A stretch of 64,000 nt of DNA from Pelomyxa schiedti (GCA_020536535.1 JAHLWZ010000794.1:1-64000); one strand, 5' to 3'. Counted from the first letter of the stretch, positions 5,951-37,709 are shown. The notes: a model not told the origin generated them from the letters alone. Numbers and translations: made by a program.

Positions 5951-5970
5951 CAAAACCCACCCACCCATAA
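5951..5970 (+). promoter_or_regulatory. Upstream ncRNA promoter element (DUSE-like CCCATAA)
   Basis: CAAAACCCACCCACCCATAA lies ~58 nt upstream of the SRP RNA closing stem. A near-identical element is on the - strand at 18263-18280. The core matches the Dictyostelium upstream sequence element WCCCAYAA. Confidence 0.6.
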
Positions 5971-6027
5971 GTATTCCGCAGGGCAATTTTTCAATCCTGT
6001 GATTCCGCTACATTCAAAGGAACTTCG

Positions 6028-6255
6028 GGTTGGGGGAGGTGGAGAATGGAGAGGGACATGCTGCGTTTACAGCCGCGCCCTAGGAAGCCTTCAGTGAACA
6101 ACGTTGCCAGGGGCAGCCTTAGCACCGTGGTTCGTTTAATGACGCTGCGCATCGGAAGAGGCCGGAAACGGAACATTCAAAAGCGGGCGCTGAGGGCGGT
6201 CACAGGAAAACGGGGCTGAGTGGGTGCTCCAATTCATTGGTCACCTCCTCCAATC
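6028..6255 (+). ncRNA. Signal recognition particle (7SL) RNA
   Basis: Helix 8 GAGG-CCG-GAAA-CGG-AACA (6158-6175) followed by TCAAAA. Helix 6 TGCCAGGG-GCAG-CCTTAGCA with a GNAR loop (6105-6124). Helix 5 CCTTCAGTG (6088-6096) pairs with CGCTGAGGG (6188-6196). Terminal stem GGTTGGGGGAGGTG pairs with CACCTCCTCCAATC, then a T-run follows. Confidence 0.85.
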
Positions 6256-6268
6256 TTTTTGTTTTTTT
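6256..6268 (+). terminator. Pol III T-run terminator
   Basis: TTTTTGTTTTTTT directly follows the 3' stem strand of the SRP RNA. Confidence 0.6.
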
Positions 6269-15087: not shown

Positions 15088-17871
15088 ATGCAGTCGGCAC
15101 CAGGGCAGCCGCACCCAATGGGGGCCACGATCCTGCCAATGGACAGCAATGCCACCGATCTCGTCGTCAACTTCGCCTTGTTGACTGACGGCGCCCCGAC
15201 TGCCGTAGTTCTATGTGTACGTGCGTTGACGTCTCCCACACCCCCCACACGCCCGCCCCCCCTTTTGCATTTCGTTTCGAGTCTCACCGCCCCCTCCTCC
15301 CATGTTGCTGCTGGCTTCCATTGCCGCGGCGTTTTGAATGCATGCAGCTGTATCTTGACGCCTCGGTAAGCAGAGACCCAGATGCCACGATCCCAATGGA
15401 GCGGACCGGGGACGTATGGCACGTTCTGGTTAGAAACGTGCCCCCGTTCGCTTGTTACGCTTACGGTGTGTCGCGTGTCATTACCGCTGGCGGGCGGCCC
15501 ACTCCGAGGACTTTTTATGTGGCGGACCCTTATTCTAGACAATTGGGTACCAGGAGCAAATGGGGAGTCGTGAGCAAGGGTGACCCCACTGTGCAATGCT
15601 CTGTGATTCTATTCGATCCTCACTTTGAGTGGTTAGTACCAGTTATCATTCACTATCACTTTTTCCAGTGTCACTACTTGTGGGGATGGGAGGCATTATA
15701 GGAATTATGGGAATGAATTGGAGGGAAAAATGAATGAGTGGTGGCTTTGGTTCATCTCAAGTTATTGTAGGAATGGTGATCGGCCATGTGTGAAAAGAAG
15801 GGCCTCTCCTTATTCTTGCATATATGAACTTCATGTTCGTGGATTCACTGTGCATCCATCTTCAGGTGCTGCAAGTCCTGGGTCATTTCTTGGCGTTGTG
15901 GAAAAAATTCCTCACCTTCTACAACTTGGTGAGCGTTGAAGGCTATTCCTCTTTTGAACTCACTCTAAGGATAAGGTGTTACAATGGTTGAACTCCTACC
16001 CATTTTTGAGTTCAACGAGCTGGCACATCGCAATTCTCCTCGTCTTGTCAATTACTGGGGATATGCTCCCGAATTTTTCTTTGCCCCGATGGGGAGATAT
16101 GGAAATGCAACAGACTTTAAGATTATGGTCAGGGAACTCCACAAGCACGGAATTGATGTCATTCTGGATGTGCACCCTCCTTGCATCTTTCTTTTACTAA
16201 TAATTTATAATCCTAGGTTGTGTTCAATCACACTGGAGGAATTTGTCTAGAGGTTTTTATCCACCTAAATGGGATACATTAGCTCCCATTTAGATGGAGT
16301 TGTATCAACGCAATAACTGCAGGCAATTGGGAGAAATATATACTACATCATTGCCAATGGCAAGCATACCAACTACTCTGGTTGTGGGAATACACTCTGC
16401 TGCGCCTCTCCCGCTGCTTCCTTTTTAATTGCGGACTGTTTGCGTTACTGGGTAGAAGAAATGCATGTGGATGGGTTCCGGTTTGATGAAGTAACAACAA
16501 AACCCAACTCTTTCTCAGTTCTCAAATGAATTTCAGGCACCAATCTTGCTGCGGACTGAGACAGGTGCTTTAGCCGATGGGTCCCCCTTGTTACAAGCAA
16601 TGGCTGAGGATCCAGTACTGAATTCTTGTCGTTTCATTTCAGAATCATGGGTATTCTGCTTCCTTCCCCAGCAACATGCACGGCCCCAAAACATTTATGT
16701 CAATCTACTAGGATGCTGGCGGTGCTTATACTCTGGGCAATTTTGCTGCAAAATATGGGTGGAGTGAGTGGAATGGCAAGTTCAGAGATACTGTGAGGTC
16801 TTTTGTGAAAGGTAGGGAAAAAAAAAACTTCAGGGACAATATCATGACAGTTTATTGCAGGAACGGATGGCTTCGCAGGTATTTTTGCCAGCTGCATTTG
16901 TGGGTCATCTGAGGTCTATGGGAAGAATTCGTCACCAACGAAGTCAATAAACTTCATTACATGTCATGATGGCTTTTCTTTATACGATTTAGTTTCATAC
17001 AATTCCAAGCACAATGAAGTATGGATTTTACTTCAACCTCTTAACTCTGATTCAAATTTTAGGCAAATAATGAAGGCAACAGAGATGGAATTGATAACAA
17101 CCTTAGTTGGAACTGCGGTTCTGAAGGAGGCACTGAGGATCCTCATATACTCACCCTTCGCCAAAAGCAGATGAGAAATATGATACTAGCCTTAGTTGTT
17201 TCACGTGGAACCCCGATGATTTTAATGGTTTTTTGTTGTACAAGGTTTGCTTCATATTTTGACACAACAACCAGGGTGATGAATACGGTCACACTAAACA
17301 AGGCAACAACAACGCATGGTGCCAGGATTCTGCACTCAACTGGTTTCATTGGAATAGTCTCGCAGTTGACACCTATGGATTGGCACGATTTACATCTCTT
17401 TGTCTTCGATTTCGCTCAAATCATCATCTACTATGTGCAGAAAAGTTTGTGGGCTCTGCAGGTTATAATAATAATAATTGCCTTACTTACTATACCCTAA
17501 AGATATTGAGTGGCATGGTACAACTCCAAACAATCCCGATTGGTCTCCAACTTCACGGCTGGTTGCCTTTACTTTGAAGGATGTTGCTAATTCCGTTTAC
17601 ATCTTTGTTGCATTCAATGCTTATTGGACTCCAAAAGGTTTGATAACGAACAACAAAGTATAAAAGCCAATCACCACAAAAAGATGTTGAGCTCCCTCAC
17701 CCTGACAAAGTCTGGCTGTCAGTAATAAATACTGCACAAGCACCTCCCAATGACTTTTGTGAGGAAAATCCACCACCAGCACCAATCCGGTGTGTGGCAC
17801 ATGGGCCAAATACTAGCAGTGTTTTGACAATGGAACCATATTCCTCAATGCTTCTTATTGCCGCCATGTGA
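15088..17871 (+). CDS. Isoamylase / GlgX-type glycogen debranching enzyme (CBM48 + GH13)
   Basis: [88 protein letters not shown]. Confidence 0.95.
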
Positions 17872-17930
17872 AAGGTTTCTTTGTACACAATCACTGGGAG
17901 CCATACTGAACAACAAACCAAGCAAAAAAA

Positions 17931-18206
17931 CCCAACAACCTTTCCCCTACTGTAAAGAAGCAACTGAAACACATTTGAGAATTTTGCTGTGAACTGTGAG
18001 GACAAACTTTTGCTCCCATTACTTTCAACAGCATACCCACACAGAGTAACTGTGAGAACGGGGGAGCCAACTGAATTGATCCTTCCCGTGTTTTCTTATG
18101 GTGCCCTTTTTGGATGGTAATTATTATGGGACGGGCCACTACTAACTTGGTTCGGAAATTCTCGATGAATGCCAGGCACCGCTGAAGTTCTGCACACAGT
18201 GAAAAC
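17931..18206 (-). ncRNA. Candidate structured ncRNA of unknown family
   Basis: Same upstream element as the SRP gene at the same distance. 5'/3' complementarity (ACTGT/ACAGT, AGAA/TTCT, GAGAATTT/AAATTCTC, GAAC/GTTC), an inner GCTCCC/GGGAGC stem, and a T7 run at the 3' end. Lies between two convergent genes. Confidence 0.5.
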
Positions 18207-18262
18207 TCATTACACGTTAAAACAAATGCCGGTTCAACGCCGGAGCGACAGCCCATGAGTAA

Positions 18263-18280
18263 TTATGGGGGTGGGTTTTG
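18263..18280 (-). promoter_or_regulatory. Upstream ncRNA promoter element (DUSE-like)
   Basis: The - strand reads CAAAACCCACCCCCATAA, matching 5951-5970. Confidence 0.55.
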
Positions 18281-18308
18281 TGTTTTTCTGGTACTTGTGG
18301 TACAGGAT

Positions 18309-21300
18309 TTAGGAGGATGCTAGAGCCAGGAATTTGGATTCTTGGGCTGAATTGCCAATGGCGGAGTAAAAGGCAGCAACATTCCGGCATGCACGAGAAG
18401 CATCGGGATGGCCATTGGGGAATAACTTCTGATAAACTGTAACCATCTCCTGGTACATGAATTCCGCCTCACTGATCTGGTTATTGCGGTAGCACAATAC
18501 TGCCATATCATTTAAGGTGAGAGCAATGTCTGGGTGCACCTTTGTTTTTTGTTCAAAATGAATTCAATGTGAGGATAGGAAAACCTCGCCGTAGTATTGA
18601 TGCAAAATTGCAAGACTTCGCTTATACAATGGGAGTGTTTCTTCCACAGACCTTGAAGCAAGATGAACATTTTTCTAAGATTAAATTTACACCACACCTT
18701 CCTTGCCTCTGGAACAGGTTGGCGAGTTTGAGCAACGTTTGACATATGTTAGGGTGTGTGGGCCCAAACTTCTTTTCGGTAGTTTCAAGTGCTTCCCGGA
18801 ACATTTTTTCAGCAGCAACGTACTCCCCTTGATCAGTGAGTATTGCCGCAACGTTGTTCCTGGTTTTTTGAATCACAAGAGATGAGATGAAATTTAATGT
18901 ACATAGACTGCGCAGTATCAGGGTGTTCGGCGCCAAGAACCTTGTTTATTTCTTGTCAAGAGTTTTCATTTATGAGAGTGACAAACCTCTCTGCGTATAT
19001 CGAGGCACTGCTTATAGAGTGTAAGGGCAGTTTTAAAATCTCTCATCCTTGCGTGCAAAACCCCATAGTCACTCAGGGATTGGGCAACCTGGGTTTGTTC
19101 AAAAAAGCTACGGAGGTACCATGGCATACTTCAGGATGCTTTATTCCAAACGCTTGTTTCTTTATTTCTAGTGCTCTTTCGAAAAGTGGCTTTGCCTATG
19201 GAAGTCCAAGTCCTTGAGCTTTAGAAAATGAGCAAAAGAGTCACCTGTGAATACTTCCCCTTTTCTACCTGTTGAAAAAAATTGAGAAGGAATACCACGT
19301 AAATATCAGGTTGCACACATAAACCCCAGCCAAGTAAGCGAGTGCATGCGCAACATCGGGATGGGAGTCCCCAAAAATATCTTCATATATATGTACAGCT
19401 CTTTCAAACATCCTTTCTTTGGGTATGGTTTGCATTCAAGATTGGAGCAAAATGTTTTGAGATTGTAAAAATGCCTGCTTCATCATAGCGAGCTTGGGAA
19501 AGGTACAAAGAAGCGAAATTTGAGAGTGTCATGGCCTACGTGTAGATATGAAAGAACTTCGACAAATTGTTTGAACATACAACATCTGGATGATTGGGAC
19601 CATGACACCTCTCTCGAATCTTCAAAGCGGTATCGAAGTGTTCCTCAGCAAGCTGTGGTAGAATTGAGATTTTAGAGGAGATCATGGCTCCAACTTTATC
19701 TTTGCCTTGATCTTGGTAAAGACACCCTAAACCATTGTAGGACATCCCAGTTTCTGGATGGTTTAGTCCAAGTAACTACCAGGAGTTATTCTATCGGCTG
19801 ACACGTGGTGAAGGGTACAACCTTTTTCCTAATAACACATGACCCTGCGTAAAGTGGCTCCGCCTTGTCGTACTGTCCCATCTTTCTGTGGTAAGAAGGT
19901 TAATCACTTCAAAAGAAAAGATCAGAACCGGAATAGAATTGCTAAACTGCACATTGAAGCTGCCACTTCCCGAGATTCTTCTCCATGAAGCTTCTTTCGA
20001 GTTTCTAGAGACTCATTGTACATTGGACATGCCTCTTCATACCTTGCTTGAACCCGATAAAGGTACCCAAGAGCATCTCTGCACTGCTATCAGTATTCCC
20101 ACAACTCAGAGTTGCATTTTTACTGTATATCAGCAATGGCACCCAAGTCACTGCCATGCTTGACAATAGACAGTGCTTTCTTTAGCAGGGTCTCAGCTTC
20201 AGAATAATATGCAAGATCCTGAAGAAATTTTCCGGTTTGACGCAGATTTGCGTGACTGACAGTGGTGGACATCATATTTTGTACAAGAAGGGTGGCGGGC
20301 CTTTCAGCTTGGCACGCACGGAAATATTTATACCTATAAATAACAAGGTTAATGTTGTTATGATATTTACCTTTATAGGACACACAAATCAAATAAATAC
20401 TGGTCGGATGAGAGTATGAAGAATGTTTCAGGTGCAGTAATGAAAAGCGCAAGTTCTCGGAGGTTACTATCTTGGAGGAATTGGTATGGTACCTCTTCAC
20501 ATTTCCTTTCCACAGACTCTTGATTCCTGCCAAATTAAGATCAAATTCGCACACTTACTTTTGAGGAGTGAGTTGGGCACACTGGAAAAATCGGATAAAT
20601 TTAGTTCGCAATTCTCGGCGGGAAGATGGATTGTATCTTGTAGAAACTGCTTGTCGCACAAAGTCGTGTGAAAAATTCAAAAAGCCTAATTGGGGGGGTA
20701 CTCGGTGGAGACGTAGCTCTTGTTCTAACTAACCTGATTGACTAGCGAGGAGATCCGAGAGAGCCAACTGTAGTTCACTCCATAAAACTGGTGGAATATC
20801 CAAAATCGACAAGGCTTCGCTTTCTAAGAGACCCTTCCTGCTAAGCCATATCTTGTTTTTTTTTCAGTCAATTTTTTTGCCTTCATCCTCGTAAACTTAC
20901 AAGAGACATTAATTCTGCGACATATTTGCTATTAACATCAAAATCTAATTCTATTCTAGCAAGCACCTGCACAAAAGTGTAATGATGATTGTGGTTATGT
21001 AGTTTTTACTTGACTGAGAAGATCAGGGATGTTCTCACACTTTAAGCATTGTTCGATTCGTGCACTAAGTGTTTCGTAGGTGCCATGCACTCTTATTTCA
21101 TCCAAGATAGTCCGAAGGAATAGTGGGTTGGAGGATTGAGGTGTTTGAATGAGTCTAAGAGCATGTGAGTGAATACAAGCCGGAGTAGTAACCTCTCAAT
21201 CTGCGATGACGAGAGAGACTTTGAACACTCAGACATATATGCAGTAACCAGTTCGAATCTTGCCTGTTCTTCCAAGGGCTGAACATTAAGTGCGTTCCAT

Positions 21301-37151: not shown

Positions 37152-37709
37152 TATCGATCTTGAGATCTAGAGGTTTTCGAGGAAGAGGAAACTGCGAAAG
37201 TAGTCCCACAATGAAGAGTGATGGGGTTTTGTGCCCTCTCCTGGCGACAGCAGTGCCTGGACCCTTTTGAGGGTTCTGAGACCAACATCACAAGATGTGT
37301 GGGGTTGGCCTGGGAACCCACAACAAAAATGGCGTATTCTTTCAACTGTTGTCAATCTTGGCACTCAGAGATTAGGATGGTCAGAGAGCTGCTCCCTTTT
37401 TGTAGGTCATTATGAGGGTGTAGCTTCACTCAGCACTAACAAGTGACTTCTTTTTCGCCAGACCCCTACTACCACCCTAGGATATCCGGTATCTACTGGA
37501 AAGTACTATTCCGGGGTGCCGCTAGTCACAGACTGCAGTTTTTACCTCATCTTCTGGTGTATCTCGTATCTACGAAGGAATACCTTCCTAGCATGGTGAT
37601 ATTCAAAAATGTCAAAAACCGACACTCCGGTCTTTTCATCGTCCTCCTTTTGAAAAACATAAAAACAAACGAGCAGCAGGACCACGCGGTAGACACACAT
37701 AGGTGATTG

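Follow-up and report, generated by a model that had tools for sequence, protein, structure and literature searches.

A candidate single-copy small RNA gene with a DUSE-type promoter in the archamoeba Pelomyxa schiedti

We found that a discrete, unannotated small RNA is made from the minus strand between two protein-coding genes of Pelomyxa schiedti, and that its 5' end lies at G18068. We favor the interpretation that the locus is an independent single-copy gene for a non-coding RNA of approximately 143 nt, extending on the minus strand from G18068 to a run of seven T residues (17930-17924); we assign this reading a probability of about 0.62. All positions are those of the window, the 64,000-nt stretch of genomic DNA that was analyzed (JAHLWZ010000794.1:1-64000), unless a contig is named. 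The locus had been singled out in an earlier sequence-only reading, as a gene for a rod-like structured RNA of about 275 nt beginning near 18206. The analysis bore out the discrete minus-strand RNA with an snRNA-type promoter box and a putative T-run end, independent of the 3' UTR of the adjacent TPR gene. The size did not hold, and only part of the structure did.

Materials and Methods

Genome searches were done on the P. schiedti assembly of 52,367,397 bases in 5337 contigs; the published single-cell assembly has 52.4 Mb in 5337 scaffolds (PMC8887013). The RNA runs that contained the locus were three single-cell libraries only (here X1, X2 and X3), from one sample in one study. These were available as contigs assembled with k=31, which give only coarse depth and carry no strand information. 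The strand of the small RNA at 18068 is known solely from the orientation of the template-switch oligo (TSO). The date (2023) and labels of X1-X3 suggest that they are identical to the P. schiedti single-cell transcriptomes of 2023, which were prepared by a modified Smart-seq2 protocol with in-vitro polyadenylation (PMC10579272). If so, a non-polyadenylated small RNA could be captured because of the in-vitro polyadenylation. The Smart-seq2 TSO is AAGCAGTGGTATCAACGCAGAGTACATrGrG+G, and the oligo-dT primer differs from it in that it continues ...GAGTAC-T30 (PMC8579666). Exons of the neighboring genes were translated singly by reference, and domain matches are given per exon, with no spliced model.

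Results

A small RNA with a mapped 5' end

The locus lies between the 3' ends of two convergent genes. The features of this region are:

18259-18537, minus strand: last exon of the TPR gene, stop codon TAA at 18309-18311 (CT..AC joints; matches to TPR_10 and TPR_12)
17679-17925, plus strand: last exon and 3' UTR of an isoamylase-like gene, stop codon at about 17869-17871 (GT..AG joints and reading frame)
18068, minus strand: 5' end of the small RNA, a G and the likely transcription start (TSO junction in X1 and X2)
17926-18068, minus strand: body of the small RNA, approximately 143 nt if the 3' end is in the T run (RNA contigs)

We found that the high-depth contigs of X1 and X2 had the same right end, position 18068, followed by the non-genomic sequence CCCATGTACTCTGCGTTGATAC. 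This is the reverse complement of the end of the Smart-seq2 TSO (...GTATCAACGCAGAGTACATGGG). A TSO junction marks the 5' end of the RNA that was copied, and the minus-strand RNA therefore begins at G18068. The genomic bases upstream of 18068 are GTT and not GGG, which excludes an artefact of strand invasion by the oligo.

The small RNA is apparently abundant. Its contigs reached 18068 from 17964 in X1, 17952 in X2 and 18034 in X3, at depths of approximately 110, 160 and 70, respectively (estimates from bin depths). The depth of the neighboring mRNAs was 9-24, so the small RNA was several-fold deeper in all three libraries. The left ends of its contigs were junctions with the Tn5 adapter, at a different site in each library. 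Because the contigs were cut at Tn5 sites, the true 3' end is not seen in them.

The small RNA is separate from the transcripts of the genes on either side. RNA contigs of the TPR gene stopped at 18259-18275, and bin depths between 18108 and 18241 were zero in all three libraries, although a hole in contig coverage is not proof that a transcript is absent. On the other side, an exon of the isoamylase-like gene (17502-17631) matched ISOA1-3_C (E 3.7e-12), and contigs of this gene ran unbroken from 17679 into 17981-18063. Its transcript thus enters the RNA gene and is antisense to it over at least about 30 nt. This overlap is a fact of layout and not evidence of regulation. In the region 16537-20400, introns of both neighboring genes were numerous and short (41-61 nt), and all joints seen were GT..AG on the gene strand.

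DUSE-type promoters of small RNA genes in P. schiedti

The promoter of the small RNA was compared with those of the standard small RNA genes of this genome. Rfam searches of the genome gave the following:

U1: 25 matches listed
U2: 33 matches listed
U4: 10 matches listed
U5: 18 matches listed
U6: 21 matches listed
U11: 1 match listed
U12: 2 matches listed
U6atac: 1 match above the family cut-off
RNase MRP: 1 match above the family cut-off (C811:110023-110515, 81 bits)
RNase P: 1 match (C676:50003-50354, 91 bits)

The major snRNA genes are thus highly multi-copy (10-33 matches listed per family). We found the sequence CCCATAA 58-64 nt upstream of the U6, U2, U6atac, U12, U1, U4, U5 and MRP genes examined. 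In every U6 gene examined (10 of about 20), (A)CCCATAA was present with its first C at -62 to -64. The core of the U2 genes was at -58 to -63, with CCCACAA in some copies, and that of the MRP gene was at -63. The U11 variant is CCCATAG; in RNase P the core is CCCACAA and lies a little farther upstream. In Dictyostelium, an element named DUSE is located approximately 60 nt before the start of small RNA genes and serves both Pol II and Pol III genes; Kjellin et al. (2021) did not expect its sequence and spacing to be conserved outside Dictyostelia (PMC7919456). Judged by its sequence, the CCCATAA core of P. schiedti is the DUSE of Dictyostelium.

The two classes of gene differed in other elements. 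The Pol III-type genes (U6, U6atac, MRP, RNase P and SRP) all ended in T5-T13, and a G/T-rich flank after the T run was common to the SRP and RNase P genes. The Pol II snRNA genes U1, U2, U4, U5 and U12 had a 3' flank of the form CAAT...A-run, and the Pol II snRNA genes carried a box AAAT(T)CGAG / TTTTCGAGG near -30.

The SRP RNA gene in the window had a DUSE whose position relative to the annotated RNA was ambiguous:

5952-5970, plus strand: DUSE located ahead of the SRP RNA gene or inside it (element AAAACCCACCCACCCATAA, which the sequence-only reading had used for comparison)

The Rfam match to SRP RNA extended over 5981-6258 (plus strand). A start at 6026-6027 is predicted from the DUSE, whose first C is 5964, and from the TTTTTC box that stands at +22. 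At this very point helix 5 is closed, by pairing of GGUUGGGGGAGGUG with CACCUCCUCCAAUC, which precedes the T run. The Rfam start is at 5981; the Alu-like CCUGUGAUUCCGCUAC is aligned inside what would be the promoter, where no helix 3 can form. The alternatives are an SRP RNA that is without the Alu 5' domain in P. schiedti and an SRP promoter that is unusual.

A DUSE and a -30 box upstream of G18068

We found that G18068 has its own promoter elements at the spacing of the reference genes:

18124-18130, minus strand: DUSE-type core CCCATAA, the second, internal box of the locus, first C at -62 (spacing and core as in the reference genes)
18090-18100, about -32 to -22, minus strand: A/T-rich, putatively TATA-like box CATAAGAAAAC, within which ATAAGAAAA lies at about -32 to -24 (from the alignment)

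The -62 spacing agrees with the range of -58 to -64 in the alignment of 20 reference genes. The probability that a CCCAYAA site falls by chance within the 7-nt reference window is approximately 0.002, calculated from motif counts in the 64-kb window. The ATAAGAAAA box resembles GATAAAAGGAG and TTAAAAAGCC of U6 genes and GATAAGAGCCC of U6atac, all at the same position. A TTTTC-type box, found at +22 to +36 from the DUSE in most of the genes checked, is replaced by an A5 run at this locus; the RNase P gene is likewise without a clear box.

One alternative is that the RNA is a transcriptional by-product, in which a chance DUSE-like site between two genes gives rise to a short transcript that is stable and without function. 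The core is frequent, with 42 CCCAYAA sites observed in the 64-kb window and 23 expected (about 1.8-fold), and so is not diagnostic alone. In addition, one half of the promoter is atypical, the greater part of the RNA is unstructured (see below), and the RNA is single copy, with no relatives found in the genome or in JGI metagenomes. However, the depth of the RNA was several-fold over that of the neighboring mRNAs in three libraries cut at different Tn5 sites, and its start was exact and identical in two of them. Moreover, the site at 18130-18124 was the sole one of the 42 that had both an A-rich box (at +31) and six or more consecutive T residues no more than 150 nt from the predicted start; the only other core site in the window with a box and a T run was that of the SRP gene. 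Of the 42 core sites in the window, no other showed the combination of DUSE, -30 box, significant hairpin from +2 and T run. Based on these results we consider a by-product unlikely.

Structure of the RNA, its 3' end and the polymerase

We found that significant structure was limited to the 5' part of the RNA, and that the first T run downstream of the start was a putative Pol III terminator:

18012-18068, minus strand: 5' hairpin domain with a GCUCCC/GGGAGC closing stem and an inner CACAG..CUGUG hairpin (predicted by folding)
17931-18011, minus strand: A/U-rich 3' region of approximately 80-84 nt without significant structure (z +1.06; essentially unpaired in the centroid)
17924-17930, +139 to +145, minus strand: T7 run, putative Pol III terminator, followed by the G/T-rich flank GCTTGGTTTGTTGTT

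The first 57-59 nt folded at -22.1 kcal/mol (z -3.28; 1 of 200 shuffles was as good). This hairpin begins at +2, and the same helices were present in the centroid of the whole RNA of about 143 nt, the overall stability of which was average compared to shuffles (z -0.03). The inner GCUCCC/GGGAGC stem enclosing CACAG/CUGUG, which the sequence-only reading had described, was retained by the minimum-energy fold as well as by the centroid. The description of a structured RNA overall was too broad, as significant structure did not extend beyond the first 57 nt.

The T7 run that had been proposed as the end of the RNA is present at 17930-17924 and is the first run of four or more T residues after the start at 18068. 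Runs of at least six T residues occur 1.15 times per kb per strand, so that a T run alone is weak evidence. A T run followed by a G/T-rich flank like those of the SRP and RNase P genes, and unlike that of the Pol II snRNA genes, favors Pol III and a length of approximately 143 nt. By analogy to these genes, the small RNA is probably transcribed by Pol III. An ATG-initiated frame of 47 codons passes through the T run.

The RNA might instead be a Pol II product of the Sm class, similar to an snRNA, that starts at 18068, uses GGGUUUUUUUGC as an Sm-like site, and ends near 17872 after a 3' hairpin (GGUUUGUUGU...ACAAAGAAACC), giving a length of approximately 197 nt. Pol II genes also use the DUSE, at -58 to -63, and the Sm site of P. 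schiedti U2 is AUUUUUUG. A closing helix of 9 bp can be drawn downstream of the T run, and CAATAAGAAG, which follows, is faintly like the CAATAAA..A-run flank of U1. However, the fold downstream of the T run was not significant (z -0.26), and in the Sm-like site the U run is not preceded by the usual A. The -30 region does not have the AAATTCGAG / TTTTCGAGG box of U1, U2, U4 and U5 and looks like the box of U6 and U6atac. Furthermore, the locus has no A-run 3' flank, and its G/T-rich flank is similar to the flanks of the SRP and RNase P genes. Together, these observations make an Sm-class RNA quite improbable.

The upstream DUSE-like box

The sequence-only reading had placed the promoter further upstream, at a motif described as the same element as that of the SRP gene:

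18263-18280, minus strand: first DUSE-like box, motif CAAAACCCACCCCCATAA (from a motif search), apparently not productive

We found that CAAAACCCACCCCCATAA does resemble AAAACCCACCCACCCATAA (5952-5970), and the likeness stops a few bases past CCCATAA. What the two share is a DUSE, which is generic and common to the snRNA-type genes of this genome. Since the core is a general promoter box of small RNA genes, the statement that the locus has the SRP promoter element is true solely in that sense. The longer motif, of the 18-nt type, was not enriched in a scan of the genome (5 matches compared to 6 for a reversed control); the enrichment noted above for the window was one of the core.

This box was part of a model in which a rod-like Pol III RNA of approximately 275-280 nt extends from near 18206 to the T7 run, and in which 18068 would be a processing site. 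The box (18269-18263) is at -63 from G18206, and short complementary segments do exist between the ends of the stretch, as had been listed. However, the region 18108-18241 was without RNA depth in the three libraries, and a separate DUSE is located at -62 from the mapped 5' end, 18068; a processing site would have no need of one. At the position of the A/T box, the upstream site has GC-rich sequence, with neither a T nor an A box, and transcription from 18206 would run into T4 at +2 to +5. The predicted folds were worse than shuffles (z +1.18 for 281 nt and z +1.68 for 333 nt), and the proposed end-to-end pairings were absent from the minimum-energy fold. We conclude that an RNA of this size is very unlikely, and that the box at 18280-18263 is a second DUSE-like site that is apparently unproductive.

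Two other DUSE-like sites were noted. A third locus with the extended motif, AAAACCCACCCACGCCCATAATTAC at C877:7936-7956 (minus strand), shares CCCATAATTAC; an A/T box was absent at the usual spacing, and nothing downstream of the motif matched Rfam. In the window, CCCACAAT at 37205-37240 (plus strand) is followed at +22 by GGTTTTGTGCC, a box that the U6atac and MRP promoters also have. There was no Rfam match within 400 nt of this site and no T run, and it is possibly a chance match.

The small RNA matches no known family

The earlier finding of no match to a known RNA was upheld: searches with Rfam 15 at E<=10 gave nothing relevant on 17500-18700 or on 17915-18075. The rows listed at this threshold were chance-level matches to lncRNA, snoRNA and miRNA models, far below gathering scores. 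At gathering thresholds, SRP RNA was the only match in the whole 64-kb window, and a tRNA scan found none. BLAST-level searches for paralogues in the P. schiedti genome, up to E<=10, found only the locus itself, indicating that it is single copy. A scan of JGI metagenomes for relatives by exact 23-mers gave 0 matches.

We considered individual classes of RNA. U1, U2, U4, U5, U6, U11, U12 and U6atac were all found elsewhere in the genome, with no match at the locus, and pairing of the small RNA with U6, U6atac or U2 was not better than that of shuffles. The suggestion of a diverged RNase P RNA was not sustained, as the RNase P and MRP RNAs are located elsewhere and the locus has no match to either. 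7SK, approximately 330 nt long, has GAUC motifs paired in its 5' hairpin and a second hairpin near the 3' end, ahead of the U tail. The small RNA has no GAUC in its 143 nt, no significant 3' hairpin and no Rfam match, and its proposed assignment to the 7SK class is not supported. It is not a spliced leader (SL) RNA, with no GU donor after a leader, a single copy, and no shared leader among loose contig ends. It has neither the C and D boxes of one class of snoRNA nor the ACA three nt from the end of the other (H/ACA). An Alu-domain-like RNA acting in trans with SRP RNA was rejected because the two-hairpin layout and an SRP match are absent, even though GUAAU is present. Dictyostelid Class I RNA was rejected on length (about 143 nt compared to about 60 nt) and on pairing, as the 5' end pairs with nt 52-57 and not with the 3' end.

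U4atac was tested directly because it was the sole standard RNA without an Rfam match in the genome. It was undetected genome-wide (Rfam, E<=0.1) although U11, U12 and U6atac are present, and the small RNA is single-copy, like the other minor snRNAs. At 18118-18104, ACCAUCCAAAAAGGG could pair with the stem II region of U6atac. However, this complementary stretch (ACCAUCC..GGG) is at -50 to -36, upstream of the 5' end and therefore outside the RNA. The small RNA itself has no UGCUAAC (stem I) and no AAUGA-type k-turn; its Sm-like GU7G is doubtful. Its duplex with P. schiedti U6atac was worse than those of shuffles (z +1.99), and a different sequence, C1038:13369-13412, fits the U4atac pairing better than this locus does.

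C1038:13369-13412 (plus strand) was the one plausible locus given by a search of the genome with a pattern of the U6atac-pairing regions. It has AAUCCAUCC..GGG..UGCUAAC, with an Sm-like AUUCUUUUUGG further on, and upstream of it are a DUSE with one mismatch and a TTTTAGAAGG box. Neither Rfam nor folding confirmed it as U4atac.

For telomerase RNA, reading of the sequence found no CCCUAA-type or AAUCCC-type word in the small RNA in any permutation; the telomere repeat of the host may differ from these. No terminal telomere array was seen in the assembly among TTAGGG and GGGATT arrays. Arrays of (GGGATT)n were short and internal, at about 13 loci (C1969:907-972 and about 12 others), and (TTAGGG)3-4 occurred only at three interstitial sites (C1298:7124-7147, C1866:2659-2682 and C1393:1666-1689). 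That the locus encodes a missing essential RNA, either U4atac or telomerase RNA, is highly improbable.

Discussion

The small RNA is best filed as a new single-copy orphan among the DUSE-driven small RNA genes, matching no known family. A limited literature search found no studies of non-coding RNA in Archamoebae. The closest comparison is to the DUSE genes of Dictyostelia (snRNAs and Class I RNAs; Hinas & Soderbom; Kjellin et al. 2021, PMC7919456), which have the same CCCA[T/C]AA with three consecutive Cs approximately 60 nt upstream. Many Dictyostelid Class I genes also have a downstream T run, as at this locus, and in both cases the product is small, abundant and non-coding. Class I RNAs are approximately 60 nt long, with a short stem that joins the ends and a conserved 11-nt motif beside the 5' arm of the stem (PMC7919456). 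In contrast, the small RNA is approximately 143 nt with ends that do not pair with each other and is encoded by a single-copy gene, whereas Class I RNAs form a family of 18-39 genes; the host here is an archamoeba and not a dictyostelid.

Within P. schiedti, the gene is like the type-3 Pol III genes U6, U6atac, MRP and RNase P, with a DUSE at -62 to -64, a putative T-run end and a G/T-rich flank. The A-rich box near -30 is like that of U6 and U6atac, and the single copy is like U6atac, MRP and RNase P. However, the small RNA has no match to these RNAs in sequence or structure, and its gene is without the TTTTC box (+22 to +27) of most U6 genes.

In layout, the RNA may be compared with BC1/BC200 and B2. 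These are Pol III RNAs with a structured 5' domain and an unstructured, A-rich 3' part; they are mammalian, derived from tRNAs or SINEs, and have internal promoters. The analogy would lie in a stable hairpin at the 5' end, an extended A/U-rich region that stays single-stranded, and an oligo-U tail at the 3' end. There is no homology to the small RNA, and the resemblance is one of layout alone.

If the locus is an independent Pol III gene, then the snRNA-activating complex would bind the DUSE and TBP would bind the ATAAGAAAA box at about -30. RNA polymerase III would initiate at G18068 and terminate within the T7 run, and the transcript would end in an oligo-U tail such as La or Lsm-type proteins bind. 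The product might be the RNA of a small ribonucleoprotein, with the 5' hairpin providing stability or a handle for protein and the single-stranded tail acting as the working surface. It is conceivable, if doubtful, that the RNA has a regulatory role, as an abundant Pol III transcript specific to the archamoeban lineage, and that its single-stranded tail of about 80 nt binds a target much as 7SK, B2 or BC1 do. The closest candidate for such a target would be the convergent isoamylase mRNA, to whose 3' UTR the small RNA is antisense; a telomerase RNA is less likely.

At this locus the arrangement of DUSE (-62), A-rich box, start and putative T-run end can be read at nucleotide resolution. The way in which its start was found indicates that template-switch junctions in published single-cell libraries can be used to map the 5' ends of small RNAs. 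Our results suggest that a small-RNA promoter of the Dictyostelium type works at equal spacing in a distant amoebozoan, and that it drives RNAs outside the known families.
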